This document shows, piece by piece, positions 201 to 41,824 of a DNA stretch of 51,858 nt (position 1 is its first letter; every line of letters starts with the position of its first letter). Location: contig NIVC01004281.1 of assembly GCA_002269645.1 (NCBI GenBank), positions 1 through 51,858 on the forward strand, written 5' to 3'. The position numbers and the translations under genes are program-made. The notes under the pieces were generated by a model that was not told the DNA's origin, did not search any database, and saw only the letters and a list, made by a program, of their open reading frames with translations. This DNA comes from Macrostomum lignano (lineage: Eukaryota).

Positions 201-3200
201 ATGGCGGCCCCACTGAAGACGTCCGGCCCTACGACTACGAAGGCGTGGAGCCGCAGTTTATCAGGCGGGCCGAGAAGGAGCTCAACGAGAAGCCCAGCCA
301 GCTGCCGGCCCACATCGCCAGCCTGAGACGCTGGCTGAGCAGCATGCCGCACCTCAGGTGCCGGACAGGTGAGTGACAGCTTGTGGCTCTGCTGCAGGCC
401 AATCATCTTACAGGGGGATTGTAGGAACGGCTGGACAACTGTGGCGGTTCGGGAAGAGGGGAATTAGAGGAGATCTGGGGAAGAGGGGAATTAGAGGATA
501 TCTGGGAAAGAGGGGAATTAGAAGAGATCTGGGGAAGAGGGGGAAGAGGGGAATTAGAGGAGATCTGGGGAAGAGGGGAATTAGAAGAGATCTGGGGAAG
601 AGGGGAATTAGAGGAGATCTGGGGAAGAGGGGAATTAGAGAAGAACTAGGGAAGAGGGGAATTAGAGGAGATCTGGGGAAGAGGGGAATTAGAAAAGAAC
701 TGGGGAAGAGGGGAATTAGAGAAGACATGGGGAAGAAGGGAATTAAATGAGATCTGGGGAAGAGGGGAATTAGAGGAGATCTAGGGAAGAGGGGAATTAG
801 AAGAGAACCGGCGAAGAGGGGAATTAGAGAAGACCTGGGGAAGAGGGAATTAAATGAGATCTGGGGACGAGGGGAGTTAGAGGAGAATAGAGGAAGAGGC
901 GAATTAGAAGAGAATAGGGAAGCTCTATCGCACAAAGTGAAGTCGCAAAGACCAGTCTAATTTGAGGCTGCACAGAGCGCAGCCAAGCGTGCTAGAACAG
1001 CAATAGAGCAGCTCAGAAACAAAAACTTGGTATTTATTATTGTTGTTTAAACTAAAAAACAAGCCCAAGAATTACTTTGCGAATCGGGGCAGCAAAACAA
1101 AGGAATAAAATTTGGGTTGCCAATCAACCAGGCTGAATATCCGCAGATAGCGCAGCGATAAAATAAAACTGGATTACATGCTGGATGAAGCAGGGAGCTG
1201 CGAGGTGCAGCTGCAAGCCTGGATAAACACATTTTATACCCAACTAATCTCAGTGTTGCAGTTGGCCTAAAATATTCGTTCTTCACAGACAGCAGAAAAA
1301 AAATCTATTAAAACGAGCAACTTTCTACAGTAGGAACAATATTAATAAAAGCAGAAAAATGAGTGAAAACGGAAACAAGCGACAGGATGGGAGATTACAA
1401 AATATTGAGTTGCTGGATAATCAGAAGCGGCATGCAGTCAAAGCGGGCTGTGTGGGGCTAACAAGACGGATTTTAGTGCTTGAAAAATAAAACAAAACAG
1501 TAAAAACCACGGGACCGCCACAATGACAAGTTTATCTGTCCAGCCAGAGAGTCGGCAGCCAACGGCTCAGCGCTCCGAGCTGCTGCACTCGCCATTGTGC
1601 CGCTGGCTCGGCTCGGAGTCGGCGGCCGAGGCGGCGCCTTCGGTGAGGGCGAGGCGGCGATTCTCCGCGGTCAAAGGGATCCACCAGGAACTGCTCCGGA
1701 GTGTAGTAGGACTGCGGGGGCGGCGGAAAAGGGGCAGTTGATGCGCAATATGCTGCTTAACTACTGCCAGTAGAGTAGACACCAGAGGGGAATCCAAGAC
1801 ACCAGAGGGAATCCAAGACACCAGGAGGGGAATCCAAGACACCAGAAGGGAATCCAAGACACCAGAGGGGAATCCAAGACACCAGAAGGGAATCCAAGAC
1901 ACCAGAGGGGAATCCAAGACACCAGAGGGGAATCCAAGACACCAGAGGGAATCCAAGATACCAGAGGGGAATCCAAGATACCAGAAGGGAATCCAAGATA
2001 TCAGAGGGGAATCCAAGATACCAGAGGGGAATCCAAGATATCAGAGGGAAATTCCAAGACACCAGAAGGGAATTCAAGACGCCAGAGGGGAATCCAAGAC
2101 ACCAGAGGGAATTCAAGTCGCAGGCTCATCCCAGCTCACCAGCCAGGCCACCACGCGGCCAGCGCCAGGCAGAGTCTCCAGGTCGGGCAGTCGGGCAGCC
2201 GCGAACTCGGCACCGGCCAGCGAGGCGGCTCGAGCCCGGCGCTTAGCGGCGGCGGCCGCAGCGAAGGCGGCCAGCTGGACGGCGGCGACTCCGTCCGCTT
2301 CAGCGCGCGTTGCTGATTCTCGTCATCGCCATCGTCGGCGGAGAGTCGGACAGCAAAGTCGGCGACGCGGCTAAACAGTCGGCGACGGAGCTTCTGGCGA
2401 ATGCCTTCAGGAGCCTCCGACTGCTGCTGCTGCTGTTGACGCCGCTCCTTCCCGGCCTCGCCGTCCTCGGGCAGGTAGTGGTCCACGCAGCGGTCAACCC
2501 AGGCCACCACCAGCTCGCCGCTGTCCTCCGACAGCCGCGTGCACTTGGCCAAGCCGTAGGCTTTGGCCGACTGCGCCTGCGGATTTGCGGATATGGCGAA
2601 GACGAGTTCAGGCATTCATGCGGCATTAGCCCGAATCAGTGTACTTGTTGAATCCCCTAACCCTAACGTAGCAGACAAGCAGTCATGCCCGACCCGCTCA
2701 CACAGGGTGTACTGCAGTCCAGAAATGTTCTCATCGCCGGGCATGTACAAACTCTGCAGTTTAGAGGCTGGACCTCAATGGTGTGAATAGCACGGCAAGC
2801 CCTAAGGACAATTTCCGTTATCGAACCCGGGACTTCAGCACGAGAGTCACACATAGCTATTCTGCGCCCCATCCTAAGCAACCCTGGTGGCCCTATTCGG
2901 TGCAGTTCGATGGCCTTATTGAGCGCAGGTTTCTCTTCTGCGACGTGCCAACTTTCCGCATCACAGCATGGCCACTGCCCCACCCCGTCACCTTGGCAAC
3001 GGCGCTATTCACCGGTGCCATCAGCGTCGGCTGGACAGCGTCGCGCGCCGAGGCGACCAGCTCCTGGGCAGTGGCCTCCTTCACGGCCGGACAGCGGGCC
3101 TCCAGCCGGTCCAGCAGCTGGGCGCAGGCCAGGCGGTCCAGGCGCGCCACAGCGGGCTCGAAGCGCGCCAGCAGCGGCGCCGCGGTGGCAGCGGCACGGC

Positions 3201-4761
3201 GCAGGCCGCCCTCGGTGAAGCCGGCGGCGGAGCGGACGCTGGGGCTGGCGGACAGGGCCCAGTCGTAGCAGCTGGCGGCCCGCTGCCAGGCGGAGGCCAC
3301 GGCCGGATAGGCGGTGACCCGTTGAACAAAATCGGCTACCATGGCGATTGAAGCGAATTTGAAATTTGCTGAAAAATAAACAGCAGTTTAGGATGGCGTC
3401 GCGTATAGCAACAAGCTTTTTACACTGGGTTGAAAACAGATATAAGAACTAAATTTAGAGACTTACATAATCTGGAGAAATTCAATTATGCCTTGAGCAC
3501 TAAAGTAAACAGACTCAGAGATATGCCTCAACCCAGACTCAAATAGTCACTTTCTTGGCTGCAGCAGCAGATAAGCGCCGGGGTCAAAGGTAACCCCAGA
3601 CACTGCAATGTGAACAGCATTGCCTGCCCTAGACAGGAAAACAGACGGAAGACCAAAGTCTAAAGTCAATTCTACAGATAGTAAACAGCACTATTGCCAC
3701 CAGAAGTGCGAAAACTTGCGAAATATTTCGTCATTATTGGGCTCCGAAAATGGGATTTTTTTACTTTGCTCGAATTTACGCGAATTTGTGTCTTGCCCAA
3801 CACACATGAGGATTAAGCCGCATCGAATCACTTCGCTCCGCAGACGACCGATTCCTGCTGCGCTTCCTTCGCGTGGCCAAGTTCGACCAGAGCCGCGCCA
3901 GATGCTGCTGGACAACTACCTGACCATCCGCAAGTCGCCCAAGGGCACGCCGTCATGGTTTGACTACCCTTCTGTGGACAGTCCAGAGGTTAAGGTGAGG
4001 CTGATTACTATTTAGCCAACTTTCTGGCAAACAGAGGCTCAGAAGTCCTACGCCACTTCCTTCGGCAGGAGTACCTCAGCCATCCTTTCCACGTGTTTCT
4101 CGGACACACAAGCGAAGGCGAGGGCGTCTACGTGTCCAACATGGGCTACTGGGACCAGCAGAAGATGACGTTCGATCAGCTGATCCGCTGCATGTACATG
4201 TCAGTGGACGCGGTGCAGCTGGACCAGTACAGCCAGATCAACGGCATCAAGGTCCTGATTGACATGAGCCGGTCCAATCGAAATCAACTGAGCTTCTTCG
4301 AGAACCGCAAGAACTTCTTCTCTCTGATGCGCAACTGGCAGGACGCCAGTCCCAATCGCACTAAAGCTGTCATTTTTGTGAACGAGCCGGCGTTCTTTGA
4401 CGTGATCTTCACCCTGATCAAGAACGCGCCGTTTCTCAAGGAGAAGTTCAAGAAGAAGCTGCACAAGGTCGGCAAGGACTACGCCAGGCTCAGGAAAGTC
4501 ATCGGGGAGCAGGACGCCGACCGTCTGCTGCCCAAGGAGCTCGGCGGCAGCAACGGCACCCTGCAGGAGCTGATGGAATGGACAAGAAACAACTTCGGCA
4601 GCGAGCGGATGCACAGGGAGTGGCGCCTTCAGCGGCAGGAGATGGAGGTTGACGAATCCAAGCGGCTGCCAACGACCAAGGACTACTTGCGCACCGAGGA
4701 CAGCGCAGCGGACGCGACCACTGGTATCCAGGGCACCTTCACCAAGCTCAACGTTGACTGA
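201..4761 (+). CDS. CRAL-TRIO domain lipid-binding protein (alpha-tocopherol transfer protein-like / clavesin family), 3 exons
   Basis: Exons ~201-368, 3844-3994, 4069-4761 with GT/AG ends. Reads ...AEKELNEKPSQLPAHIASLRRWLSSMPHLRCRT|DDRFLLRFLRVAKF (CRAL-TRIO N-domain), then INGIKVLIDMS, AVIFVNEP, LLPKELGG and terminal GIQGTFTKLNVD. Needs +1 base at the C-run 208-211 (to join ATG 201) and at 3898-3899; exon 2 is 151 bp where phases require 152. Confidence 0.88.
451..920. repeat. 27-bp purine-rich minisatellite (CTGGGGAAGAGGGGAATTAGAGGAGAT)n in CRAL-TRIO intron 1
   Basis: About 17 direct copies visible; source of ORFs 373..750 and 408..935. Confidence 0.95.
1532..3342 (-). CDS. Perilipin (PAT-domain lipid-droplet protein), 3 exons, nested antisense in CRAL-TRIO intron 1
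   Basis: Exons 3342-2992, 2576-2140, 1711-~1532, all phase 0 with GT/AG. N-terminus VQRVTAYPAVASAW...PLLARFEPAVARLDRLACAQLLDRLEARCPAV matches the PAT domain; exon 2 has VDHYLPED typical of the perilipin C-terminal bundle. Exon 2 is 437 bp (needs 438; probable lost base at 2291-2292). The true stop in exon 3 is uncertain (1532 or 1567). Confidence 0.8.
1787..2117. repeat. 20-21-bp minisatellite (GACACCAGAGGGGAATCCAA)n in perilipin intron 2
   Basis: About 16 tandem copies. Confidence 0.95.
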
Positions 4762-5595: not shown

Positions 5596-6180
5596 TAGGC
5601 GTAGCAGCAGCCGCTGAAAGATCAGGGAGGGGGTAGCAGCAGCCGCTGAAGGATCATCAGGGAGGGGGTAGCAGCAGCCGCTGAAGGATCAGGGAGGGGG
5701 TAGCAGCAGCCGCTGAAAGATCAGGGAGGGGGTAGCAGCAGCCGCTGAAGGATCATCAGGGAGGGGGTAGCAGCAGCCGCTGAAGGATCAGGGAGGGGGT
5801 AGCAGCAGCCGCTGAAAGATCAGGGAGGGGGTAGCAGCAGCCGCTGAAGGATCAGGGAGGGGGTAGCAGCAGCCGCTGAAGGATCAGGGAGGGGGTAGCA
5901 GCAGCCGCTGAAAGATCAGGGAGGGGGTAGCAGCAGCCGCTGAAAGATCAGGGAGGGGGTAGCAGCAGCCGCTGAAGGATCATCAGGGAGGGGGTAGCAG
6001 CAGCTGCTGAAGGATCAGGGAGGGGTAGCAGCAGCCGCTGAAGGATCAGGGAGGGGGTAGCAGCAGCCGCTGAAGGATCAGGGAGGGGGTAGCAGCAGCC
6101 GCTGAAAGATCAGGGAGGGGGTGGCAGCAGCCGCTGAAGGATCAGGGAGGGGGTAGCAGCAGCCGCTGAAGGATCAGGGA
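5596..6180. repeat. 32-35-bp minisatellite (CAGGGAGGGGGTAGCAGCAGCCGCTGAAGGAT)n, intergenic
   Basis: About 18 tandem copies, some with an extra CAT. Confidence 0.95.
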
Positions 6181-6557
6181 GCAAGAAGCATATAGTTCCC
6201 AGGAACATGGCCCACCCCAAACTTTCAAAGTCAAGAGTCATTTAGCATAGCAGGTATACAATACAATGTCATTTGCAGAGACGCGGAGATTAAATTAAAT
6301 AATCAGTTAAGAACAATTAACTTCGGTATAACTAGAACAGAAAACGATTTGCTTGCAGTATTAATAATAATACTACTTGCAGTAGGGTTTGCAATGTGAG
6401 AAAGGAAAATTTATAGCCAAACAGAGCCTAGCGACTTATAAAAAATGCAGTTTTAAAAATCTCCAGTCTCAAAACATCTTACAGCGGTGACCTTCATATC
6501 TGATTTTATTGCTTGAAGAAACTTACACCAGCCCTTGCTGGTCACGCGGGTCCATTG

Positions 6558-8839
6558 CTAGTACAGACCCCGGTTGCGGCTGCAGTGCCGGCACACTGTA
6601 GTGTACATGTTGGCACCGCGGCACACTCTGTGGGGGCGACGGGGTGAAGATGATGAAGAGGCTGTAATGTGAGCTTTTTAGAATCTGAGACAAGCTGGAG
6701 AGGTGGGACCGGGATCTGAGAAAGGCACAAGAGATGGCACGGGGATCTGAGACAGGACCTGGAGATGGGACGGGAATCTGAGACAGGAGCTGGAGATGGG
6801 ACGGGGATCTGAGACAGGAGCTGGAGATGGGACGGGGATCTGAGACAGGAACAAGAGATGGGACGGGGATCTGAGACAGGAGCTGGAGATGGGACGGGGA
6901 TCTGAGACAGGAGCTGGAGATGGGACGGGGATCTGAGACAGGAGCTGGAGATGGGACGGGGATCTGAGACAGGAGCTGGAGATGGGACGGGGATCTGAGA
7001 CAGGAGCTGGAGATGGGACGGGGATCTGAGACAGGAGCTGGAGATGGGACGGGGATCTGAGACAGGGCAAACACGAATACAGCTGACTCACTTGCACAGC
7101 CAGGGCCCCATCAGCAGCTGGGCAGCGGAAACCGATGTGCCGTAGCCAACAGAACCGAATCGCATCGCCATCGCGGCGGCTGGCGTCATCGGCTGCCGAT
7201 GCTGCGCGTTCCGGTAGGCAGCAGCAGCAGCAGCCGCAGCAGCAGCCGCTGCGGCCGCCGCCCGACTCTGCGGCGCTACCATCCGGATGGGCGTGCCAGC
7301 GACGCCCGAGACCGGGACGCGAAGGAAGCCGTAGGGGACGGATAGGACAGCGGCTGGTCGTGCGGCGCCGCCAGCGACGGCAGCGGCCGCCCTAGCGGCT
7401 GAGGCGGCTACAGCGGCGGAGACGGCAGCAGACGCAGCGGCGGAAGCAGCGGCAGACAGCGGCGGTTGAGGCGGAGACTCGCGTCGCTGGCGCCGCTGTT
7501 GCGGCTGCTCGGACTGTTCGGACTGCTGCGAGTTCCTGCGGTCGGTGTTGAAAACCGGGACGAGCTCCCGACAGCTGTTGACCATCTGCGGCGTCGGGGT
7601 GGTCGGATTGCTGGAGCCGCCGCCGACGCCTGCGCTGCCGGTGGCCGAGGTCGCCAGATCGAGGCGCGGCTGCTTGGCAACCGCGGCGGCTGCGGCAGCG
7701 GCGGTGGCGGCGGCAGTGGAGCCGAGCACGGGTGCCGTAGGCGGCCGCGGCGGGTTCGAGTCCTGCGAGGCGCAGCGCCTGCGTTTTCTGGCCGGCATGG
7801 CCGCGGCCGCGGCTACAGCGGCGGCGGCCACGGCGGCTGTGGCGGCGGCATCGGAGAAAGCAGCCGTGCCAGCGGCGATGGGTCGAAGCGCCACCTCCGG
7901 CCAGTCGGACCGCAGCTGCGCCGGCGAGGCGTCGACACAGACGACGTCAATGTCGGCAGTAAAGTAGGCGGCCAGGTCAGAGGCGGCGAGCTGCCGGGCC
8001 TGGACCAGTGTGCCGGGGTGGGCGGCCTTGACAGCGCGTGCGGCGGCGGTGCAGACCTGGATGATGAGTAAGGCGCTGAACATTGGATAATGCGGACACA
8101 AGATACCAGAGGAAGTATAGGGGGCTCTGACTCACACAGGACACTGTACAGGGGGCTCTGACTCACAGGACACTGTACAGGGGGCTCTGACTCACACAGG
8201 ACACTGTACAGGGGGCTCTGACTCACAGGACACTGTACAGGAGGCTCTGACTCACACAGGACACTGTACAGGGGGCTCTGACTCACACAGGACACTGTAC
8301 AGGGGGCTCTGACTCACACAGGACACTGTACAGGGGGCTCTGACTCACAGGACACTGTACAGGGGGCTCTGACTCACACAGGACACTGTACAGGGGGCTC
8401 TGACTCACAGGACACTGTACAGGAGGCTCTGACTCACACAGGACACTGTACAGGGGGCTCTGACTCACACAGGACACTGTACAGGGGGCTCTGACTCACA
8501 CAGGACACTGTACAGGGGGCTCTGACTCACAGGACACTGTACAGGGGGCTCTGACTCACACAGGACACTGTACAGGGGCTCTGACTCACACAGGACACTG
8601 TACAGGGGGCTCTGACTCACACAGGACACTGTACAGGGGCTGACACACACAGGACACGGTACAGGGGCTGACACACACAGGACACTGTACAGGGCCGCTG
8701 ACACACACAGGACACTGTACAGGGGCTGACACACACAGGACACTGTACAGGGGCTGACACACACAGGACATTGTACAGGGGCTGACACACACAGGACACT
8801 GTACAGGGGCTGACACACACAGGACACTGTACAGGGGCT

Positions 8840-8906
<67 letters not shown>

Positions 8907-11900
8907 GACAGAGGCTGATACACACACACACACACAAACACAGGACACTGTACAGGGGCTGACACACAAACACAGGACACTGTACAGGGGCTGACACACA
9001 AACACAGGACACTGTACAGGGGCTGACACACAAACACAGGACACTGTACAGGGGCTGACACACAAACACAGGACACTGTACAGGGGCTCACGTACACAGG
9101 ACACTGTACAGGGGCTCACGTACACAGGACACTGTACAGAATCTCTGACAAGCACACAGTCTCCAAGCGCCTCAATGCCTCACCTCGGCGCTGGAGCACT
9201 CCAGCATCACCAGATCGGCGCCGAGACGGCAGGCGCGCAAAGCTTCGGCCTCATCGGCGCAGACTGCGGCCACCCGGCCAAACGGAGCAGCGCAGCGCCT
9301 GGCGCCGGCCAGTGCGGACGCAACGCCGCTGCCGCCGCCCCCGCCGGCTGCGGTTGTATCGACAATCACGACAGCGCCGCCAGTTGACGCGGTTGAAGAG
9401 GCAGACGGTCGGACCCCGCCTACAAGGAGGCCGTGTCGCTCCAGCAGGCGCTGGCCGGGCGTGCAGCGGCTGTCAGAATCGGCGCAGACGGAGCCGGGCC
9501 AGTCGCACAGGGCGGCCTTTTCAACTAACCTGGCAGAGATAGGGGAAGGGCAAACATGTCGCTAACTCGTATTGCTCGATGCTGGCTGGCGTACTGCCAG
9601 TAGTATTATGCAAGAATAAGTACACAAAAACATGGTGGCATGATTGCAAGAATCAACGCGCCAACGCTGGCCTGGAAAAATATTGCAGATTATGGCATTA
9701 ATCTGCATAATCTGCAATATATTTTCAGGCCAGTATTGCGCAACACTAACACACTGTTTCTGGAGTTCAGTTTGGGGGATTCTGGAGATCAGTTTGACTA
9801 GACCATCGAAGTCTCACCTGTTGGCATAGGTGGCTAACCCGGACGCCCTGGAAAGCACAGCTGGCAGCAGCCGGCGGGCCCTGGCCAGGCAGACTGGGCT
9901 GCCGCTGATGGTGGCCACCCGCTGCGGCACGGAGGAGATGTAGGCGCCTTCAGCCACTGACCAGCTGGCTTCGCAGCGCAGACGGGTGAGCAACGCATCG
10001 GCAAATGGGACGCCAGCGAGTACACCTGAGCGAGCAGAGTTGGTTAACCAAAATATTCAGCATCCGAGTGATTTCTATCAACAAGTAATGCGAAGGCTGG
10101 TAGATAGATTAAGATACGAGGTCTCGTAGGTAATCATATCTTGAAATTGAAGTTTTTTATAGCATGCAAGATTAAGTGCTTTAGCTTGGTCAAAATTTTG
10201 CCAGTAACATTTCTATATAATACTTCATAAAGTATCACAAAGCAGTCACTAAAAGAGACTTAGTACACAAAAGGCTAAGCTTCAAATTAGTGTCAGAAGA
10301 GATTCTTTAAGTTTAACGAAAAATACAGCTTTGAAAATTGATAGCTCTATTAGTTAAATTATTTTTAAACTTGAAACTTACAACTAAAACCAAGTCAATT
10401 CAGTCACGAACTAGTATAGGTCCATGAAATCTCAATACGCATTATTTGTTAGCTTGTAGAAAGTTAACAGATTTTATTCTGTGCAATCTACATTTACATA
10501 TATTGACTACATCTCTATATCATTGAGAATTGCTTTACTTACACTCATACAGAAAAATAAACAACTGTAGGAATATGGATGTACTTTTGTGTTTTTAGAA
10601 AAACACCAACATGAACAATACTAAATTTTTGAACATTATATTTACAGTATTACAAATTGTAATAACTTGTATTGCAGAGTTTATATTATTATTAAGTATA
10701 TTTTTCAGCTAAATTTGATAAAAATTACCTTTGAGAAGCTAAATATACCAATATTTGAGTATAATATAGTATTTATATATTAAAAAATAATCACTATTGT
10801 GACCCAAATGCCTATCTGAACTGGTTTGTAACTTGTAAGCAAAGCAGACACAAGGGGAAAAGTATTCTAGGGCAAAATCTCCATGGCCAAAACAGTTGGG
10901 GGGAAACCGCCAGAATTCATATATTTATGGTAAATATTAGGCCTACAACTAATTTTTTGTGATTTTTTTATTTTAAATGAGCTTTAAACTTACAATGAGT
11001 TTACATTGTTGGTGTACAAAAAATGACAAAATTAAAATTTGGCATAATCTCCACATGCATAGATGGAATATCTAATTTTTGATAAAAAAAGTTCCCAAAA
11101 ATTAAAAAAAACTAGATTGAAAATTATGTTTAACTTACTAAGAAATTAAAAAGTAAAACAAAAAAGTAAAAAAATAGTTTCTTATAGTTCAGTAAAATGT
11201 AAGACAATTTTTTATTTAACTTTTTAGTAAAAATAAAAGAATTGCAAGTCTAAACTATAGCGTGTATTTTATGGTTGTCTTGGCATTTTTTGTATACAAT
11301 GTTAGTCTATTGGCATACAAGAGCTAAGGAAGCAAATTTCAGGGCGATTTCCTTGCCCTGAGGCAACTCTCACCTTTTAGCAGATTTCTGATACTCTAAA
11401 GGAAATGACTAAGTCTTTCAAACACTGCAACTAGCAATTTTAATACTTAGAACAAATTGTATTATCTTGCAACTTGCTTACTTTATAGTTGGCAGCAAGT
11501 TGTCTCTCTTGGCTTGCACTGAGCGTCTATTTATACCTAAATTATAAACTGTTTATAACAATAACAAAGAATGTTTTGCAAGAATATTTTTGGATGTCAT
11601 AAAAGTTAAACAAAGAAAATTATTTTTAGTGCGGTTTTGAAATATGATTTTCTAAGAAACATAATATGCAAAAACAAGTAATTATAGAACATATATACAA
11701 TATTATCAATGCCCTCATACATGCGCAACCTCCAAATTTCGGTCGGCCATGCGACTTAGTTTTAACAAAAATGCGACGTAGTTTTTGGCCAAAAATGCGA
11801 ATTACATGTAAAAAAACCCGAAAGCAAAATTAACGCAACTTTGGGTAAACGGCAGGAGTAACTATGACTGTCTTATAAAGCCAAAATGCCTCGTCAGCTA

Positions 11901-13507
11901 CTTAGTACTACTACTCTGTGTTTTTTCGGGTTGGCATTTTTGCGACTTCCTTGGTTGGCCGCCAAATCGGTCGGCCGGATCGGCCGACTCGGCCGACTGT
12001 TGCGCATGTATGAATGCCCTACTTCAAGTTCTCAATTTTTTAAAGTCAAGTTTTTAAATAGAAATTATATTTTTATATAAAATAGATAAAAATATAGTTG
12101 GCATTCTTTTGGTTAACAATTACCTTAAATAGTGATCATCAGCTCAAACAATGACAATCAGCACTAAAAACAGTTGTAATTGACATGAAACAAAATAAAA
12201 AGCTAGCAAACTGACTGTTTATTTCAAAAGATGATAAGATTATTATAGCTTATATTTTACCTTCAGTTTACAATCACCAACATGTATATTGCCTACTAAA
12301 ATGATTGCAAACCAAAGCTGGCCATAGTAAAGCCTGTCAAATAATTTCAATTGTCAAGTTGCAAGTTTGAGCTTGCAGCCTATATATATATCACTTTCAG
12401 TTTACAATCACCTAAACATATATTGCCTATTGAAATGATTGTGAACCACAGCTAGCTATAGAAAAGCATATCAAATACAAAAATATAGTCACGTGCAGAA
12501 AACTGCTGCTCATTCTAGATCAAGGGCATTGAAATCCCCTCTCATCTTTGTACCCCTTTACATTCAGTTTACAATCATTTCTATATATGCACTCTACTGA
12601 AATGATTACAAACTGAAGCTGGCAATATACCTTTACTATAAGTGTATATCCATTATATAGGCCTACAATATTAATTTTAACCTAGCTTCAGTTCATAGGC
12701 CCTAATCATTTCTATTTGTATTATATATTTAAATGATTGTATACCAAAGCTAATATATAAGCATCATCTAACAAACTGCACTTTCAACTTTGGATATTTT
12801 TTCAGTTTTCAGTTTTGAACATGCCATTTTTATGCTGCAATTGATCAAAATATAAGGTGACCATAAACCAAAAGTGGCAAAATAGAAGGTGATTGTAAAC
12901 CAAAAGAATGCCATTAGGTTAAATCAAGGGTTGGCATTAAAGAATACAAGCTAAAAAGAATAACATTTTAGGATTAATACAATTATTCCAAATGGAAAAA
13001 CCAATTAACTAAGGAAAAAAACTAGAGTCCCTAGACAGTAGTTATTAGTTAATAAGATCCTATAAAGACTTTGTCATTAGACATCACTTATTTTTATAGA
13101 CCTTAAAAAAGCCTTCTAATAATTATAGGGCTTAAGCAGCTAAGCACTAATATTCATTATTAGTATAAAATTTTTATTCATTAAATCAAATGCCCAGGCT
13201 AGGCAATAGTTTCTATTTCATCTAATCTAAATAGACATATGCCAATAATTTTTTATAGGTTCTATGCAATATACATACCTTTTGTTTCAAAAATGACTGC
13301 ACATAATACAGGGTGTTCATTAAAACTATTAACTTCAGTATCATCTTCACAAGTCTGACCATTTTCTCCAGTGTTGTGAAAATTTAGTCTGCTTGCATTA
13401 GAATCAAATTGAACAAAAACTCCACCAGAGTTGCTTATAATATTATCCTCCTCAATCCATAGTTTTACAATGTTCTTTATTGCACTAAGAGAAGTAATAT
13501 GCGTCAT
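6558..13507 (-). CDS. QPRT: Quinolinate phosphoribosyltransferase (NadC/QPRT)-like protein with degenerate active site, low-complexity tail and putative C-terminal zinc finger; 5 exons, ~605 aa
   Basis: Exons 13507-13279, 10025-9818, 9529-9184, 8056-7092, 6627-6558; all GT/AG, phases consistent, total 1818 bp with no internal stop. Colinear with animal QPRT: IVKLWIEED, G|VLAGVPFADALLTRLRCEASWSVAEG, LSRASGLATYA, TPGQRLLERHGLLVGG, GADLVMLE, ADIDVV. The last exon is inferred; without it the frame ends at TGA 7088. Confidence 0.85.
6683..7066. repeat. 31-bp minisatellite (GATCTGAGACAGGAGCTGGAGATGGGACGGG)n in the last QPRT-like intron
   Basis: About 12 tandem copies. Confidence 0.95.
8120..9140. 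repeat. Compound 28-31-bp minisatellite (GACTCACACAGGACACTGTACAGGGGGCTCT)n with embedded (CA)n tracts, QPRT-like intron 3
   Basis: Tandem units fill almost the whole intron; pure (CA)n runs at ~8843-8902. Confidence 0.95.
11716..12012. mobile_element. Non-autonomous hAT-type MITE (297 bp)
   Basis: Perfect 14-bp TIRs CATACATGCGCAAC / GTTGCGCATGTATG, flanked by the 8-bp duplication AATGCCCT (11708-11715, 12013-12020). Confidence 0.88.
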
Positions 13508-14856: not shown

Positions 14857-15822
14857 ATGGCCGCAGGAATCAATGAAGCCCTTGCGCTCTTAGCCGAAGA
14901 GCTCCGCAACCGACTCGAATTAGGCCCCCTTAGACATGTGAAAATCCAGAAATACCTCCCCAGCCAAGATATCAGAATCTGGCTTACCGCATTTGACCAA
15001 AGATGTGAAAATGAAGGAATAGATGAGGAAAACCGAAAGCAGGAATTATTGACCAACTTAGATCTAAGCACTGCGTTTGCAGCAGTTCAACGCCTCAACC
15101 TCCCAGCTAATCTCCCCTATGAAGAATTCAAAGAGAGACTGATCGAAAGATTTGGAAAAGTAGGTAGCTCCGCCGAATTTCGCGAAGAGTTTAGGAATCG
15201 CTGCCAAGGCAGAAACGAATCCACTGACAGCTTTGCCGATGCCCTGATCGAATTAGCCTCCCGCGCATTCCTGAACATGGATGCTGAGCAGAGAGAGGAA
15301 GAACTGGTTGAGCAGTTCATTAAAGGTGTGAGAACCCCTCCCGACACCCGTGAAAAGCTAATCTTTGCCCAACCTGCTAGTCTCCAAGCCGCCCGCAGAA
15401 TGCTGCGCAGAATTGAAGCTGCTTACCAGATGTCCCATAAAGGTGGAATCCGAGTAACTAAGGAAGAAAAAGAGGAGTATAAAGGCAGAACTGACCAGTT
15501 GATCATCAATCAGCAGAACCAGATTGATCGCCAAGAACGAGTCATCCAGGACTTAAAGAAGCAGCTAGCAGCGCAAAGCGCTCCGCCACCCCAAGCCTAT
15601 CCCCAGCAACAGTATAGACAGCCACCCCCTCAGCAGTATAGACTGCCACCTCCTCAGCAGTACAGACCGCAACCCCAGCAGCAGTTCAGACAGCCACCCC
15701 AGCTGATGAACCAACCACCAAGGCGTGAACCCCCAAGAAGGAATGAGCGTCAGCCCCCCAATCCCAGATATGAGCCGCTGAAGTTCCGTAACCCCCGTGA
15801 CTCCCAGAAGTCGGGAAACTGA
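14857..15822 (+). CDS. gag: Gypsy Gag (321 aa)
   Basis: Capsid-like core (WLTAFDQRC, YEEFKERLIERFG, RCQGRNESTDSFADALIELASRAF, EQFIKGV), Q/P-rich PPPQQYR repeats, no CCHC knuckle seen, ends SGN-stop. Confidence 0.92.
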   Translation: MAAGINEALALLAEELRNRLELGPLRHVKIQKYLPSQDIRIWLTAFDQRCENEGIDEENRKQELLTNLDLSTAFAAVQRLNLPANLPYEEFKERLIERFGKVGSSAEFREEFRNRCQGRNESTDSFADALIELASRAFLNMDAEQREEELVEQFIKGVRTPPDTREKLIFAQPASLQAARRMLRRIEAAYQMSHKGGIRVTKEEKEEYKGRTDQLIINQQNQIDRQERVIQDLKKQLAAQSAPPPQAYPQQQYRQPPPQQYRLPPPQQYRPQPQQQFRQPPQLMNQPPRREPPRRNERQPPNPRYEPLKFRNPRDSQKSGN

Positions 15823-18800
15823 GAAGCCAGGGTCGAGTTAAGAGGCCACGCCCCTCAGGCCAAAATATTGCTTACTCTCCGGCCTCCCCATCATTCGAAA
15901 ATGCCCCCCAACCAAAATACCGGCAACCTCCCCAGTACGGTTTCCGCTATCCCCGCAAAACCTCCCATGTACAGCCAATGCCTGTAAATAATGCGATATC
16001 TGTCTCCCCCAATAATTTTTCACTTCTTACCTTTGATGATGCCGACGATGCTATGCCAAATGCCCCCCATGACCCTCATGTGTACAATTCCCCCCATGCG
16101 ACCGCCTCTCATGTAACCAATGCGACCAAAGCTTATGTACATCATGCGTCCGCACCCCGTGTACCCACTGCGCTTGCACCCCATGTACCCCATGCGAGTG
16201 AAACCAATAATGCTCTATCCAGTGCTGAAACCCGCTCAAAGAAGCGACAAAAGCCAAAAACCAATTCCCCATCTCGAATCGACCTGACCAAGCTAGAAGG
16301 CTATGAAGCTGTAATAGTCGGCGATATCCAGAAAGAATCGATTAATTTCTTGCTAGACACAGGCGCCAGAAATAACTTCCTGAGCCGCTCAACCTGGTCT
16401 AAGCTATTCCGTGCCGATCAAATCCGAGACACTAGCAAAAGCATCAGTACATTTGACGGTACCCCAGTACAATTAGAAGGAGAAGTATCTGCCCAAGTGA
16501 AGTTTGGCGATATCCAAATCGAAGTAGACTTCCTCCTATGCCGACACGATTGCGATAATATCTTAGGAATGGAATTTTTCCTGTCCCAATGTGAAAGCAT
16601 TCAGCTAGCCAAAGGAATGCTAGTGCTTAATGAAGGTACCTGTATACCCATGCAGTATACCCGCCTACCCGTGAAAGTTTGTCGAGTTTATACTCAAGAA
16701 AGAGTAATCATCCCAGCTAATAGTGCCCTCCGAATACCCGTGAAGTTAGCCAAGAATTGTGAATCGAATTATGGCACCCCCATGACCATTGAAGCCATTG
16801 GCGATACTGTCCGAACCCGAGATTTCTCCCTAGAAATGGTTCCGACCCTAGTAACCATGAAAGAAGGCAAAGGAATTGTCGAAATTATTAACCGCCACCC
16901 AGTAGACGTGAATCTAACTAAAACTTCCCTAATTGGCTTAGCCAGACCCATGAAAGCTAAAGATCTAACCTATTGGCAAACCCCAACTCCCAACCCCCAA
17001 CCCTCTGCGAAAGTCAACCAGACTCAATGTACTGAAGATTCCTGGATTAATGAAGTGAGTCTTGGCCCTGAACTGTCAGATGAACAGCGACAAGCAGTCA
17101 TCGACTTAATGAAAGAAAACCGTGAAGCCTTTTCCCAGAATGAATTAGACATGGGCCTGACACATTTAGTAACCCACGAAATCTCTATCAAAGACCCCAC
17201 CCCCGTTAGAATCCCAGCTAGACGCATCCCCCCACACTTGCAAAAGCAAGTTGACGCCCAATTAGACGATATGTTAGCCAAAAACTTAATTAGACCCTGT
17301 TATTCGACTTACTCCACTCCCCTAGTAATTGTCCCCAAGAAAGACGGTTCTATCAGAATCGTGAGCGATTTCCGAGTGCTCAATTCAAGAGTTAATTATT
17401 ACCCCTACCCCCTCCCCAATATCCAAGAGACCTTCTCCCACCTAACTGGTAGCCAATACTTTAGCAGCCTTGATTTAAACTCAGGATACTGGCAAGTCCC
17501 CATCAAAGAAGAAGATAAGCATAGAACCGCCTTCTCCACCCTAACTAGAGGCCAATTTGAATACCAAGTAATGGCCCAAGGACTTTCCAATGCCCCCGGA
17601 ACCTTCCAACGCCTGATGAATTTAGTACTATTAGGAATCCAACACAAGTTCGCCATGTCCTATATCGATGACATAATAGCCTACTCCCAAACTTTTGCCG
17701 ACCATTTAGAGCACTTAAGAGAAGTATTTAAGCGACTTATTGCCGCAGGTCTGAAGTTGAGACCCAAAAAGTGCAATCTTTTCCATCACGAGTTGAAATA
17801 TCTAGGACACGTGATTGGCCGGCAAGGCATTCAAACAGACAAGACGAAGATTGAAGCAATTCAAACTTGGCCCCGTCCCAAAGACGTAAAGGAACTACGC
17901 AGTTTTCTTGGCCTATGCAATTATTATTGCCGATTCGTGAAAAATTATGCCGAAGTGGCTCACCCCCTATTCCAATTGACTCGAAAAGGAGTCCAGAATT
18001 TCCAATCTAAGTGGAGCAAAGTGCATGACGAAGCCTTTGAGTCCCTGAAGCAGAGAATGATGTCTACTGAAGTGTTAGCCTACCCCGAATATGTCGAAGA
18101 TGAAAATGTGAAAATGGTGCTCGACACAGATGCCAGTGACGACAGGATTGGCGCATGCCTTGGCCAAATCCAGAGTGATGGCATAGAGCGACCAATAGCC
18201 TATTTTAGTAGAGCAATGAAAGAATCAGAGAAGCGATACCCCATTACCCGGAAAGAATTGTTAGCCCTTGTCGACGCTATGAGGCATTTCAGATTTTATC
18301 TGATCGGCAAGAAATTCTTAGCCCGAACTGATCATAAAGCGATAATTTGGCTCATGAGACAAACTGAAGCAACCGGAATCCTAGGAAGATGGATAGAGCG
18401 TCTGAATGAATTCAGGTTCGACATTGAACACAGAAGCGGCGCAAAACATTCCAATGCCGATGGATTGTCGAGAAGACCAGCTGAGATAGCTGAAGCCCCT
18501 GAAGTATCCCCTGAAGCAGCCCCTGAACTTGCTGGAACAGCACCTGAAGTTTCCGAAGTCCCTGACGCAGCCACTGAGCCTGCTGAAGCGATCCTTGAAA
18601 CCCCTGAAGTACCTGAAGCGATTCCTGAGAAAATTGAGCCAATCCCTGAGAAAGTTGAGAAGTTGACCCCTGTTCCCCTGAGAGATGAGAGTGCTCCCGC
18701 TGAAACTAAGGACAACCCCATGTCCCAGTCACCTGAAGCTCTGATAGAAAGCGAGACCCAGCTTGAATATCCCGAATCTAGGATACAGCTGAATGTCTCA

Positions 18801-20629
18801 GGTAGAGAAGTAGAATCAGAAGAAGAGACAGGAAAGTGTGAGAAACTATTAACTGATTACCTCCCCAACCCCCTGAAGAAAGAACAGATTGAAGAAGCCC
18901 AAGCTGCTGATCCCATCATTAAAGCCCTGCTAGAAGCCAAGAAACAGAAATTGAGCCAATTTCCCAAATCACCGGACGTGCCAGAAAAGATCAGTAAGCA
19001 TTATGCACTGATGAAAATCGATAACGAATTATTAATAATCACCGAAGGCGAAAAGGACAAAGTAGTTTTGCCCCCATCCTTAGATAAAGCAGTCTTTATT
19101 GACCTTCACTGCAGCCCCCTCGCAGGACATCTAGGAAGAGATAAAACGCTCCAAAGAATCAGAGAAAGATTTTGGCGACCCGGACTGAGCACTGCAGTTG
19201 AGCAGCTAATTGCTGAGTGCATCCCCTGCCTTGAGAGCAAGAAAGGACATTTTGTTCAGGCCCCAGTCCAGTCATTCCCCATTGGTGAAGCATTTAGCCG
19301 CCTGCATATAGACATTATCGGCCCAATATCTAAAGAAAGCAAACGAGGCCATAAATATGTCCTGACAGTTGTTGACAGCACAACTAGATATCCCTTCGCT
19401 TTTCCCATTAGAAACCAAAAGTCAGACACAGTTATTAAGATACTACTTGAACGGATAGTAGCAGAATATGGACAGCCCACCTGGATCCACACAGACAATG
19501 GAAAAACTTTCGCTAGTAAACAATTTAGAGCTTTTTGCGAACTTTATAATATTCGCCACACCTTCACTACCCCCTATCATGCCCAATCTAATGGCTTAGT
19601 AGAACGGTTTAATAAGCAAGTCAAGTCAATCATCACCTGTCTGATCAATAAGGATCATGGTGATTGGGATTTACTAATTCCCGCAGCTCTAGTAGCAGTC
19701 CGCACCAGCCCCAATTCAACCACAGGTTTTTCCCCTCACTTCCTATTATTTGGCAGAGAAGCCACCTTACCTCTAGACACTCAGATCAGAAGTACAGCAG
19801 AACACGCTGATTATCCCGCCTACATTACTAAGCATGCCGAAAGATTAGAGGAAGCTCATAAGATAGTCAAGAAGAAGTTGGAAAAAGTAGTAGAGAAAAG
19901 ACAAGTCGCCGCTGAAACTAACAAGTTACCCCCTAGAATCCCTATAGGTTGCCTTGCACTGATTAATAACCCCCAGTAGATAGCGAAGAATCCCACAAGT
20001 TCCACCGAAAGAAGAGATCCGCCTTTAGAGTTTTAGCCCAATTATCAGAAGTGGTTTTCAAAGTCCAGAAAGAAGAAGAAGGAGAATTAGTAGGGAAAGA
20101 AATGCTCGTGCATCGAGATAACCTAACTCCAGTCCCGAACTCAACCCCAGAACAAATCACTAAGGAAGGCCAGCGAGATGCCCCTGATTCCGCCCCTGTT
20201 CCCATCCCCACTTCCGCTAAACCTAAGAGACAACCTGTAATTAAGGAAGGCCAACCCAGCCGAAATTCCCAAAAATTAATCTTGCCCGAACCAGTTGAAT
20301 CTGAAGAAGAATCCGATGAAGAAGAAATTAATTGGAGATGCCAAATTAGAGAAGCAGAGAACGAAGAGTTAGAAGAGGAAATCCAGCCAGAAGAATGGAG
20401 TGAAGCCCAAACAGAGGAAGAGAATGAAATGACCGATGAGTCAGAGAGTGAGGCTCCAAACGAAGAGATCCCTCAGCCCCAACCCCCCTCTCCTGCCCCG
20501 CGAGATCCCGAACCCCTGCGCCGTCACCCCTACAATTTAAGGCCCCCACCCCAGAATAAACAGCGTTGCAACTGTCATCTAGACAGACTACTATTAGCAC
20601 TAAACCTCTTGCGCAACTTAGAATTTTAG
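15813..20629 (+). CDS. pol: Gypsy Pol (protease, RT, RNase H, integrase) in the -1 frame of gag
   Basis: Protease LLDTGA; RT FSSLDLNSGYWQV and YIDDI; RNase H LDTDAS; integrase HCSPLAGH..C..C, HIDIIGP, HTDNG, NGLVERFN. Frame is open from 15813. One lost C at 19970-19974 separates ORF 15978..19979 from its C-terminus (20051..20629, with VHRDNL and RRHPYNLRP). Confidence 0.95.
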
Positions 20630-21001
20630 CCCGTCTACACCTTCCTACCCCTCCCTCGCCGTCCCCATTCGCCCAACAGACCCCAAATTTTAGACAAAGA
20701 GAGCCCTCGACTAGACCCTTGCTATGCACAAAGGACCCCTCAAATTATCGATCGACAAAGAAACTAGAGCCCAAAGAGCGTAGAAAAATGAGGTTGGTCA
20801 CGAAAACAAGAGGACCTCCCTTGTCTGTGAACAATAGTCAGTAAATATAAGCATTTTTAGGCCATTGCACAATCAGATCCCAAGCCTTCTGCTCTCCAAA
20901 ATTCCCACTCCTCGCTAATTAATACTGTCGAGCCCGACTTTTAAATTTTTACTATCTGAGTGATCTTTATACCCTGCGCTGATTAGGCAATCAGATTCCC
21001 A

Positions 21002-22033
21002 ATGTATTCAGAAGAGAGTCTTAAGCAGCTGGAGGACGACCTTCGTCTCAGCGACTCTAATGACAGTGAGTTCGACGAGGAATCGGACAATGATTTGCCC
21101 ATCCCTGAGCGCCAACCCACAAGGCCAAGCAAGCCAGGTCCTAAGCCTCGCATTGCCTCAGTTGTGACTCGTCCGCCGCAGCCGTCCACCTCTGACGCGC
21201 ACTCGTCGTCAGCTATCTCAGATGCCCACCCGCCATCGGTTGCCCCTGATCGTCAATCGCCGATCACCAATCGCCAATCGCCGACCGATTCAGTTTCCCG
21301 TCGATCAGACGAGCGAGTTAAATTGCTCCGACGCCATGCTGATGCCCCTGTCAGCATCCCCCCGACCGCCATACAGCGCCAGCCCCCTGATGCCAGATCT
21401 GCTATCGTGTTAACGACTAATGAAGCACCCCGGCCAGCCATCCGCCAGAGACTTGGGCCTCGCCCTTCATCAACATCGCAGAAGCATCGATCCCGATCCA
21501 GGTCTCCGCCTAAGCAGCAGCCCGAGCAACCATTAGTCACTCCGCCATCGACTTATGGGGTTCGACCGATGAACCAACCGCGTCCCCGCCCCGTCCCACC
21601 TATCAAGATGGAACCGTTGGACTCCAGCATACCACCTCTGATGGCTGGATTTGTGAGACAGGACCAACCCCTGCGGGAGATTGGCGAAAATTTTACGCAG
21701 GCCATCGAGAGTCTGCCAGAGGCCCAACGCGCCGATTATCGCCGTATGGTTACAGCGATCAAGCTGTATTTCATTCATGCTGGCCGATTCCGAGACGGCC
21801 GCGAATTCCCTCAACGCGAGACGCTGCGGCCAGTGCTGCATAATCTTCGCCGTCTGCAGCCAATGCACGCTGTCGCCGCCTGGCGGCGTGCGGCCCACTA
21901 CGCACTGACAGACCTCCGCCGAGGTCCGCGCCGCTACAATGCGCAAAGCTTGCAGATCGAGATTCGCTGGCTAGGCCGAGAATGCGGCTGGCCCCATCAG
22001 CATCGGCTGCCGAGCGAACTCAATTTGAATTAG
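21002..22033 (+). CDS. Retrotransposon accessory ORF3 of unknown function (343 aa)
   Basis: Intact ATG-to-stop ORF between pol and the 3' LTR; acidic N-terminus, P/S/R-rich middle, helical-looking C-terminal ~120 aa; no signal peptide or TM segment. Confidence 0.75.
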   Translation: MYSEESLKQLEDDLRLSDSNDSEFDEESDNDLPIPERQPTRPSKPGPKPRIASVVTRPPQPSTSDAHSSSAISDAHPPSVAPDRQSPITNRQSPTDSVSRRSDERVKLLRRHADAPVSIPPTAIQRQPPDARSAIVLTTNEAPRPAIRQRLGPRPSSTSQKHRSRSRSPPKQQPEQPLVTPPSTYGVRPMNQPRPRPVPPIKMEPLDSSIPPLMAGFVRQDQPLREIGENFTQAIESLPEAQRADYRRMVTAIKLYFIHAGRFRDGREFPQRETLRPVLHNLRRLQPMHAVAAWRRAAHYALTDLRRGPRRYNAQSLQIEIRWLGRECGWPHQHRLPSELNLN

Positions 22034-40339: not shown

Positions 40340-41824
40340 TTAAACCTTCGCCCCTCCTCCGCCCTCCTCAGTCTCCTTGGCAACGCTGATAAGAAAATCG
40401 GCCCAGCTAATGGGCGCCTCCATCATGAGGAAGTGGCCCACGCCAGTCAGGAAGTGCAGCCGGCACTGCGGCAGGTAGCGCGAGTGCAGGGTCCGGGGAA
40501 TCGCCTGCGGGCTGACCGCGTCAGAGTCGCCCCAGAGCAGGCGGCAGGGCAGGCGCAGAGAGCCGAGCGAGTCCAGCCAGCGCTGCTCGAACAGGAAGCG
40601 GTCGTCCAGGTACCGGATACTCCGGTGCAGGTTCCAGGCGGCGCCGAACTCCCGGTTCAGGTCCAGCAGGTCGGCGATGTCGGCGTTTCGCTGGGCCTCG
40701 TCGGCGCCGGGGCCCCAGATGGAGCGGAGCTGCTGATTGACGAAGCCGGGGGCTGCAGGCCGCTGGCGCCGAGCCAGGCCAGCGCCGGGCCGAGCAGCGG
40801 CAGGCGGAGGATGCGCTGGCTGAGGCGCAGACTGGCCAGGCCGATGATCATGCCGCCGTTGGTGAACGTCACCGACTGGAAGAAGCCGTGCTGGAACCGG
40901 TCGGGTAGGAGGCCGCGCGAGTGCCGCGTCAGCAGCTCCGCTAGCACGGAGTCGCCCATGTCGTGCGCGACCGCGTGGCACCTGCCAGAAGAGTTGGTGT
41001 CGGTGGAATGCTGTATGAAATCAACATTCGAGTCAAGGCTCGTGAGCGCCCCAGGCACTCATTTTGGCGCCGCAGGCACTCATTTTAGCATCGCAGGCAC
41101 TCATTTTAGCACACAGGTACTCATTTTGGCGCCGCAGGCACTCATTTTGGCGCCGCAGGCACTCATTTTAGCGCCGCAGGCACTCATTTTGGCGCCACAG
41201 GCACTCATTTTAGCGCCGCAGGCACTCATTTTAGCGCCCCAGGCACTCATTTTAGCGCCCCAGGCACTCATTTTGGTGCCGCGAGCGCTATATTTTGTCG
41301 CCCTGAAGCAAAATTATTGATTTTTTGAAAAGCATTGGCATGACGCCCCTGATTCAAGTGCGCAAGCCTCACCGCCGCACACCGAGCGCCTTCCACACGG
41401 CCAGCGTGACATCGGCGTGGTCCTGGATGGAGTAGGAGTAGTTTGCCGGCAGCTGGCCGGAGAAGCCGAAGCCAACGTGGTCGAACATCACCACCCGGTG
41501 GAAGCCGGCCAGCAGCCGGGGCAGCGCTTTGCGATAGTCGAAGCTAGACGAAGGGAAGCCGTGGATGAGGCACAGCTGCCTGGCCTCGGCGGCGTTGGGG
41601 TCGCCGGACCAGTTGGGCCGGTCGGCGGTCAGGGTGAACACCCGGTAGCCCGGGAGCACCTCCAGGATGCGGCCGGCCGCGTGCCACTGCTGCAGCGCCG
41701 GCGACAGGTTGGCGAGGTTGGCCGATGGCCGCTCGGGCGGCTCCGGCACGTTGAGCAGCAGCCCCAGCAACAGGGCGACCGCTGCGATCAGGACAGTGCC
41801 CAGCCAGCGGGCGCAGGCAGACAT
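40340..41824 (-). CDS. MEST: MEST-like alpha/beta hydrolase (epoxide-hydrolase subfamily), 2 coding exons
   Basis: Exons 41824-41373 and 40981-40340. N-terminal hydrophobic anchor, LSPALQQWHAAG, HGFPSSSFD, FDHVGFGFS, AHDMG (Asp nucleophile, cf. SHDYG), TNGG, LLWGDSD, GHFLMMEAP. One base is missing in the G-run 40748-40752. Acceptor AG lies 2 nt before the ATG; a probable 5' UTR exon donor lies near 42355. Confidence 0.9.
41045..41285. repeat. 21-bp minisatellite (GCGCCGCAGGCACTCATTTTR)n, MEST-like coding intron
   Basis: About 11 copies. Confidence 0.93.

Follow-up and report, generated by a model that had tools for sequence, protein, structure and literature searches.

A predicted terminal exon completing a Cys4 finger on a catalytically degenerate QPRT-like protein of Macrostomum lignano

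The window analysed here covers positions 1–51,858 of contig NIVC01004281.1 of Macrostomum lignano, and the subject is a gene on its minus strand, between 13507 and 6500, that encodes a QPRT-like protein. The gene was rebuilt as five exons (13507–13279, 10025–9818, 9529–9184, 8056–7092 and 6627–6558); all junctions are GT-AG, the frame is kept throughout, and the predicted product has 605 amino acids. A first-pass annotation of this DNA had proposed that a hidden terminal exon builds a RanBP2/NZF-like zinc finger onto the QPRT-like protein, and its coordinates and residues are all correct on the minus strand. Splice signals and comparison with other flatworms indicate that this terminal exon is very probably real, and that it completes a conserved Cys4 finger on a protein derived from a catalytically dead QPRT. 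That degree of confidence applies to the exon and the finger structure and excludes the proposed ligand. From the same comparisons, the window gene is a predicted, divergent new member of a flatworm QPRT-derived family whose proteins are labelled 'nicotinate-nucleotide pyrophosphorylase' in databases.

Exon 1 (13279–13507) begins with the ATG at 13507–13505, has a GC content of 32%, and ends in phase 1 within the Gly codon of G-VLAG. Exon 2 (9818–10025) encodes the QPRT N-terminal domain (GVLAGVPFADA...YAN) and ends in phase 2 within an Arg codon, and exon 3 (9184–9529), which holds the first part of the QPRT C-terminal domain, with SDSRCTPG in place of TRKTTPG and VDTT in place of KDNH, ends in phase 0. 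The 965-nt exon 4 (7092–8056) carries the rest of the QPRT-like domain, followed by a basic PARKRRR cluster, an AKQPRLD motif and a low-complexity tail of ~270 amino acids rich in Ala, Pro and Gln, and closes with ...MGPWLC plus AA. A single frame runs from the QPRT homology through exon 4 to the donor, and this coding frame of exon 4 contains 0 stops as against 5 and 3 in the two other frames. Relative to all QPRTs and to the flatworm relatives, the protein has an insertion of ~30 amino acids, FDSNASRLNFHNTGENGQTCEDDTEVNSFNEHP (13405–13310 in exon 1, residues ~35–66). This stretch may be an insertion peculiar to the lineage, or else a small intron that was missed in the AT-rich exon 1, and the exact 5' structure of the gene is less certain for that reason. 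The base composition also changes abruptly within the gene. GC content is ~30% in exon 1 and the 3.2-kb intron 1, with a GC content at third codon positions (GC3) of 0.20 in exon 1, and rises to 61–73% in exons 2–5, where GC3 is 0.74–0.83; the whole window is a kilobase-scale mosaic of ~30% and ~60% GC blocks.

The 3' end of exon 4 reads GGG CCC TGG CTG TGC AA at 7092, where the TGC at 7096–7094 is the first Cys (Cys1) of the finger. The donor of intron 4 is a phase-2 GTGAGT (7086–7091, in the context CAA|GTGAGT), and the apparent stop TGA (7090–7088) lies inside it, so that reading through gives TGC AAG TGA, i.e. LCK-stop at 7088. The list of open reading frames (ORFs) contains a 337-aa frame stopping at this position. 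Because a phase-2 intron with a GTGAGT donor halts the unspliced frame at once, the finger is masked in an ORF view; the earlier statements that the stop sits within the donor and that the finger is invisible in the ORF track both hold. Intron 4 (6628–7091, 464 nt) consists mostly of a 31-bp minisatellite (6683–7066, 12.4 copies, 92% matches) and ends with a polypyrimidine tract and CAG acceptor (6661–6628). The acceptor, ...cttcaccccgtcgcccccacag|A, would start exon 5 at base 6627, and we infer that it is the main one used in the organism. Its pyrimidine tract is strong (33 nt, 6661–6629), and the site comes after the sole unique, non-repeat sequence. When 7092 and 6627 are joined, AA+A gives Lys, followed by VCRGANMYTTVCRHCSRNRGLY and the stop TAG (6560–6558), i.e. 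...GPWLCK|VCRGANMYTTVCRHCSRNRGLY. The spliced finger has the pattern W-x-C-x2-C-x3-N-x5-C-x2-C, with the Trp and Cys1 contributed by exon 4, and Cys2 to Cys4, the Asn and the basic C-terminal end by exon 5. The coding part of exon 5 (6558–6627) is only 70 nt long. A polyadenylation signal, AATAAA (6505–6510), is located 48 nt past the TAG, and no other copy occurs in the 900 nt beyond the donor.

The likelihood of such a completion by chance was estimated by shuffling the downstream 220 nt 20,000 times with dinucleotide content preserved and with any AG acceptor allowed. A C-x2-C-x8-12-C-x2-C pattern was completed in 58 of the 20,000 shuffles (0.3%), and the Asn-containing spacing in two, so the completion exceeds what would be expected from chance. 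In the proposed frame the 70-nt exon has a GC3 of 0.83, comparable to the 0.74–0.77 of exons 2–4, and its two other frames have 0.45 and 0.57; past the TAG the GC content falls to 40%. An acceptor near 6662 was considered and rejected, since its pyrimidine tract is weak (aaaaagctcacattacag) and the resulting frame has no counterpart among the orthologues. In and next to the gene there are three distinct minisatellites of 31–32 bp with 92–94% matches: one downstream of the gene (5601–6181, 17.9 copies), the one in intron 4 (12.4 copies), and one in intron 3 (8115–8837, 24.3 copies), beyond which there is an (AC)n tract (8841–9139).

Upstream of the tail, residues ~66–305 of the window protein are homologous to both the N- and C-terminal domains of QPRT. 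In Pfam, QRPTase_N scores 26.0 bits (cut-off 27) and QRPTase_C 24.8 bits (cut-off 23.1), and a phmmer search against the PDB matches human and pig QPRT with E=2e-30 over residues 68–302 (~230 amino acids aligned), in agreement with the first-pass description of the upstream protein as QPRT-like. When 1.84 billion representatives were searched exhaustively with HMMER, 292 matches were obtained, all of them QPRTs and all limited to the QPRT domain. The substrate-binding and catalytic motifs of QPRT are TRKTTPG, HR, KDNH, EVE, LDN and SGG, and alignment to human and canonical QPRTs shows that all six are substituted in the window. Relative to human QPRT, TRKTTPG is replaced by SDSRCTPG, SHRYD by SSTAS, KDNH by VDTT, VEVEC by VAAVC, LLDN by MLEC, and EASGG by QARQ. 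Since all six motifs are replaced, the domain is classed as a pseudoenzyme, QPRT-derived but not an enzyme, and the window protein presumably has no enzyme activity. Human QPRT (PDB 2JBM/4KWV/5AYX) is homologous to the window protein in both domains; however, its motifs are intact, whereas the window protein has lost them and has a C-terminal extension of ~300 amino acids that carries the finger. Shorter library matches with 37–43% identity were rejected as closer orthologues, as all of them retain TRKTTPG and are ordinary QPRTs or fragments.

Five trematode proteins share this layout, in which a QPRT-like domain that has lost its motifs precedes a long disordered tail and the Cys4 finger stands at the C-terminus. 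Three of them are long proteins among the 292 matches, with the QPRT-like domain at the N-terminus, and come from Calicophoron daubneyi (CAL8092355.1, P0020), Dicrocoelium dendriticum (CAH8449879.1, P0046) and Schistosoma japonicum (SJCHGC09401, AAW26440.1, P0038); Paragonimus heterotremus (P0151) and Fasciola gigantica (P0152) were added by profile search and end as the other trematode proteins do. Their catalytic motifs are degenerate (VPYCLTPGF, VHRSLTPGF and similar), and they have a basic motif of the KK.RL(D/N) type, in common with the window protein, and a long tail rich in Gln, Pro and Gly. All five C-termini follow C-R-x-C-G-x2-N-x6-C-R-x-C-R-x-(L/F)-R; the Calicophoron, Dicrocoelium and S. 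japonicum proteins end in ...SCRTCGSANPPGMMFCRNCRSQLR, ...TCRACGTTNGLGSPFCRTCRVPLR and ...NCRLCGFPNPSSMPFCRNCRSGLR, respectively. In an alignment of the window protein with the five trematodes, Cys1, Cys2, the Asn, Cys3-Arg and Cys4 are invariant and a basic residue follows Cys1, so that C-[KR]-x-C-x3-N-x5/6-C-R-x-C is found no more than 7 residues from the C-terminus in all six. Conservation of the four Cys and the Asn in orthologues is thus borne out, but the Trp that had been included with them, at position -2 of Cys1, occurs in the window finger only and is absent from all five trematodes.

The window protein is nonetheless a distant relative of these trematode 'nicotinate-nucleotide pyrophosphorylase / QPRT' proteins, with just 26–30% identity in the QPRT-like domain. 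Its tail is Ala-rich and encoded by the single 965-nt exon, whereas the trematode tails are rich in Gln, Pro, Gly and Asn and are divided among four exons; trematode tail motifs align with the window tail as short motifs only. Seven residues follow Cys4 in the window and five in the trematodes. SJCHGC entries were deduced from cDNA contigs (PMC1435792), and SJCHGC09401, judging from its clone name, should itself be cDNA-derived, in which case the finger of S. japonicum is contiguous with the upstream sequence in the mRNA.

The strongest comparison is that of intron position and phase, for which four trematode proteins (Calicophoron, Dicrocoelium, Paragonimus and Fasciola) were each threaded exactly onto their genomic DNA. 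In 4 of 4 loci the finger is interrupted by a phase-2 intron in the codon directly after Cys1, as is proposed for the window. The penultimate exon of the trematodes ends TGC/TGT CG|gt... and the last exon opens ...ag|N NNN TG(C/T) GG, and the window equivalent is TGC AA|gtgagt ... cag|A GTG TGC. The finger introns of the trematodes are 84–2941 nt long. Their donors are CG|gtgagt in Calicophoron, CG|gtaagc in Fasciola, CG|gtaagt in Paragonimus and CG|gtacgt in Dicrocoelium, and in the first three the donor also makes an immediate in-frame stop ('C R *'). A stop within the donor is therefore an ordinary product of a phase-2 GTGAGT/GTAAGx and is no evidence for regulated intron retention.

The remaining introns tell the same story, in that all 4 window introns are common to all four trematode genes in both position and phase. 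Intron 1 (phase 1, in the Gly of G-VLAG) corresponds to trematode codon 48, intron 2 (phase 2, in the Arg after YAN/FAR) to codon 117, and intron 3 (phase 0, between AE|V and K|E) to codon 221. A phase-0 intron at codon 177 of the trematodes is absent from the window gene. The QPRT-like domain of the trematodes contains four micro-introns of 30–42 nt and their tail introns range from 84 nt to 19 kb; the homologous introns of the window are 287 nt to 3.2 kb long. In a neighbour-joining tree of the QPRT-like domain (286 columns, 28 sequences, 300 bootstraps), the window and the flatworm pseudo-QPRTs form one clade in 299 of the 300 bootstraps, and the window is sister to the trematode and cestode pseudo-QPRTs. 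Based on the conserved introns, the shared Cys4 finger and this clade, it seems very likely that the 7092|6627 splice and the finger are real and ancestral to the family. The same findings would place the source of the DNA among the flatworms or near them, and apart from both Digenea and Cestoda. The terminal exon and splice that the first-pass annotation had predicted are in this way supported by an intron kept at the same position and phase in four trematodes and by a Cys4 finger in five proteins, one of them probably cDNA-derived.

Several observations weigh against this interpretation. The 7092|6627 junction of the window gene is predicted from DNA and from comparison, and ~22 further pyrimidine-rich YAG acceptors (tracts at least 70% pyrimidine) lie within the minisatellite, so the acceptor is not fixed by sequence alone. 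The finger loop of the window is one residue shorter than that of the trematodes, and Val precedes Cys3 where they have Phe. A hidden Markov model (HMM) built from the last 60 residues of three trematode proteins gives the spliced window tail 2.2 bits, a score that shuffled sequences also reach (maximum 11.1). When applied to all 39 possible C-termini of the window it does not discriminate, and all score ~2 bits, like shuffles. The homology of the tails is accordingly based on pattern, layout and intron position and not on score. Neither the spliced and unspliced models nor tail-like proteins are present in a collection of 15 billion proteins, and exact look-ups of two single-exon ORFs likewise gave no record. 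A word-indexed search with the 64-aa tail spanning the junction gave no match, and one with the 605-aa protein gave a single, unrelated canonical QPRT, since the candidate list was flooded with words of low complexity. The neighbour-joining clade could be inflated by long-branch attraction. In addition, the models of the cestode Hymenolepis (P0027, P0052 and P0007) have no finger and end in unrelated sequence, and no finger exon was found at the Hymenolepis diminuta locus (UYSG01011524.1, 8001–16034), where the contig stops 1.8 kb past the gene. In cestodes, either the finger has been lost or the models miss a terminal micro-exon. Finally, an AlphaFold2 model of the tail from the 6-sequence alignment has a mean pLDDT of 59, and a Foldseek comparison of this low-confidence model with the PDB returned nothing below E=3.9.

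The three alternatives that concern the gene itself can be weighed against these data. It is very unlikely that intron 4 is spliced mainly to another acceptor, such as ctgtctcag| or catctccag| in the minisatellite or the site near 6662, giving a finger-less, Pro/Ser-rich tail and leaving 6627 minor or unused. The ~22 YAG sites upstream of 6627 with tracts at least 70% pyrimidine count in its favour, and several of them give open frames of 60–165 amino acids; however, these frames are translations of the repeat and resemble no orthologue, the conserved C-terminus of the family is obtained only from 6627, and both the strong 33-nt pyrimidine tract after the only unique sequence and the GC3 periodicity favour 6627 and its frame. 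Still less probable is that the gene truly ends at the TGA at 7088, the GTGAGT and the Cys-rich frame being coincidental and the 3' untranslated region (UTR) crossing the minisatellite to the AATAAA at 6510. This would agree with the clean stop in the ORF list, and the AATAAA would also serve a UTR of ~580 nt, but it requires a consensus donor at the stop, a strong in-frame acceptor and the completion of Cys4-N (at most 0.3%), as well as chance identity with the position and phase of the finger intron in four trematodes. The protein would moreover close on a lone Cys1, without the remainder of the conserved C-terminal motif of the family. Least probable of the three is a decaying QPRT pseudogene, in which the Ala-rich frame is merely open in 73% GC DNA, and the tail and finger are not made. 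The catalytic motifs are indeed gone, the Pfam scores are marginal, and antisense ORFs of 140–201 amino acids also occur in the GC-rich exon 4. Decay is nevertheless hard to reconcile with 605 intact codons over five exons with four conserved intron phases, or with a coding frame of exon 4 that has no stops where the other frames have 5 and 3. The trematode orthologues are equally degenerate, yet they are expressed (cDNA) and keep the tail motifs and finger across Digenea, which argues for a conserved pseudoenzyme rather than decay.

With the terminal exon taken as very probably real, the kind of finger that it completes can be considered. A RanBP2-type signature is W-x-C-x(2,4)-C-x3-N-x6-C-x2-C. 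The window has x5 in place of x6, and the five trematodes have x6 and lack the Trp, so that none of the six matches the signature in full; the Trp, present in the window only, is not a feature of the family. Pfam zf-RanBP (PF00641) gave no hmmscan match at E<=10 for the 41-aa window tail, the full protein or the five orthologues, a null that stands for no match better than E~0.1 because the HMMER filters discard most matches above that value. The proposed check of the spliced peptide with the zf-RanBP HMM thus gave no match, and of the RanBP2/NZF-like assignment the resemblance in spacing stands but membership of the RanBP2 class is not supported, given this null, the x5 and the unconserved Trp. 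Other zinc-ribbon models score below threshold with the orthologues. The Calicophoron orthologue (P0020) matches DUF7577 (PF24463, E=6.9e-5, 22.8 bits against a cut-off of 28), Zn_Ribbon_1 (PF13240, E=0.008) and DZR (PF12773, E=0.016), the last two also below their cut-offs, and the sole Pfam match of the window tail is Zn_Ribbon_Prim (E=0.012, below cut-off).

Against the PDB, the single finger peptide matches only the ribbons of eL40, rubredoxin and thymidine kinase, with E>0.4. The matches of a profile of all six fingers of the family are divided between archaeal and eukaryotic eL40 (E=0.009–0.03) and the NZF/RanBP2 fingers of NPL4 (0.029), TAB2 (0.038), Nup153 (0.088), HOIP (0.098), MDM4 (0.52) and ZRANB2 (0.7), and all of these matches are marginal. 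The best of them, the zinc ribbon of eL40 (C-R-N-C-G-A-R-N-P-P-D-A-E-K-C-R-R-C-R, E=0.009), has equal spacing and a similarly basic character, and shares the G after Cys2 and the R after Cys1 and Cys3. However, eL40 is a ribosomal protein, whereas the family finger is located at the C-terminus of a dead enzyme, and the zinc-ribbon models score below threshold. All six fingers contain 4–5 Lys or Arg and no acidic residue in 27–28 amino acids. From these features the finger is best called a putative basic Cys4 zinc ribbon with eL40/NZF-like spacing, in which the four Cys presumably bind zinc.

It is unlikely, by comparison, that the finger belongs to the RanBP2-type/NZF class proper and recognises ubiquitin, Ran or GGU-containing RNA like the established members. 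As in the fingers of NPL4 (1NJ3), TAB2 (3A9J), Nup153 (3GJ5) and ZRANB2 (2K1P), there are ~30 residues, the four Cys form a pair of CxxC knuckles, and an Asn stands four residues past Cys2. The trematodes show the exact C-x2-C-x3-N-x6-C-x2-C spacing, the window begins with W-x-C, and NPL4, TAB2/3, Nup153, HOIP, MDM4 and ZRANB2 are among the top PDB profile matches. Those matches are, however, marginal (E 0.03–0.7), eL40 ribbons match at least as well, there is no Pfam zf-RanBP match, the family has not kept the Trp, and the window shows x5 in place of x6. The ligand determinants of such fingers are L-V for Ran, N-F...R-R (as in ZRANB2) for GGU RNA, and T-F or a hydrophobic pair for ubiquitin. 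The two residues past Cys2, which are T-F in NPL4, read R-G in the window, the orthologues have G-S, G-T, G-A or G-F there, and neither L-V nor N-F...R-R is present. Unlike the RanBP2/NZF fingers, therefore, those of the window and the trematodes lack all three sets of determinants, and they occur as a single copy at the extreme C-terminus. In the absence of the known ubiquitin (T-F), Ran (L-V) and ZRANB2-type RNA determinants, the sequence does not reveal which ligand is bound.

The arrangement of the predicted protein allows some suggestions about its function. A QPRT fold with destroyed catalytic motifs would form the scaffold of a flatworm pseudoenzyme, to which a basic cluster resembling a nuclear localisation signal (NLS), a long disordered low-complexity linker and a terminal zinc ribbon (C-K-x-C-x3-N-x5-C-R-x-C) would be attached. 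Most simply, the dead scaffold, the NLS-like cluster, the linker and the basic ribbon may together constitute an adaptor that binds nucleic acid or protein. Proteins with a QPRT fold assemble into dimers and hexamers, and the ribbon might mediate contacts with nucleic acid (probably RNA) or with protein for an oligomeric, QPRT-shaped scaffold. This suggestion is a weak one, made because the basic finger resembles the rRNA-binding ribbon of eL40 as well as NZF/RanBP2 fingers. A more specific possibility, which we regard as doubtful, is that a QPRT dead in catalysis was made into a nuclear or RNA-associated regulator before the lineage of the window split from trematodes and cestodes. The gains in that case would have been the NLS-like basic cluster, the disordered linker and the basic C-terminal zinc ribbon, by which a former scaffold of the nicotinamide adenine dinucleotide (NAD) pathway, possibly still binding quinolinate or nucleotide-like ligands, would have been coupled to recognition of nucleic acid or protein. 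We know of no QPRT homologue for which a regulatory role of this kind has been described.

Literature searches returned no paper describing a QPRT pseudoenzyme or a QPRT-zinc-finger fusion. The earlier remark that no such fusion is known accordingly holds for published descriptions, but not for databases, where flatworm gene models of this kind exist. In S. mansoni, the SH3 domain of SmTK3 yielded a ~1.7-kb Qprt-like cDNA as an interactor by yeast two-hybrid (PMC2734992). This cDNA may belong to the window family, and such a partnership fits a Pro-rich tail. Smp_246230, a 'nicotinate-nucleotide pyrophosphorylase' that may likewise be a member of the family, is among genes with a daily rhythm (PMC8638415).

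For annotation, the consequence would be that the last intron looks like a stop codon when it has a phase-2 GTGAGT/GTAAGx donor, and that a 70-nt exon behind a minisatellite is easily overlooked. The correct product of the window gene would thus be the 605-aa protein with the finger and not one of 583 amino acids without it. The comparisons also suggest that a conserved family combining a dead enzyme with a zinc ribbon reaches into a much more divergent lineage, and that the protein of this family, as yet unstudied, is expressed in schistosomes. As the flatworm 'nicotinate-nucleotide pyrophosphorylase' entries would not be enzymes of NAD synthesis, they should be left out of reconstructions of de novo NAD synthesis for parasitic flatworms.

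The remainder of the window contains several other genes and repeats, and no Rfam match was found anywhere in it. On the minus strand there are a perilipin-family exon (2893–3342, E=1e-14) and an alpha/beta-hydrolase exon (40340–41824, E=4e-8). The plus strand carries a CRAL-TRIO domain exon (4093–4761, E=9e-20) and a gene for LMF1, a lipase maturation factor, including the C-terminal domain of that protein (32169–37255, E=4e-25 and 1e-49), in which the region from 34.8 to 36.6 kb has seemingly similar repeat-filled introns. An apparently intact Ty3/gypsy retrotransposon is located at 14857–19979 on the plus strand. It encodes a 1333-aa pol with protease, reverse transcriptase, RNase H and integrase, and a 321-aa gag-like ORF without a Pfam match. 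Beyond it are ORFs of unknown function (20051–22033). A tandem repeat of ~183 bp (61 codons) forms two opposed arrays, at 25074–26531 on the plus strand and 27241–28511 on the minus strand. Both arrays keep a long open frame (ORFs of 485, 175 and 248 amino acids, with near-identical units), and together they make up a large inverted satellite structure.

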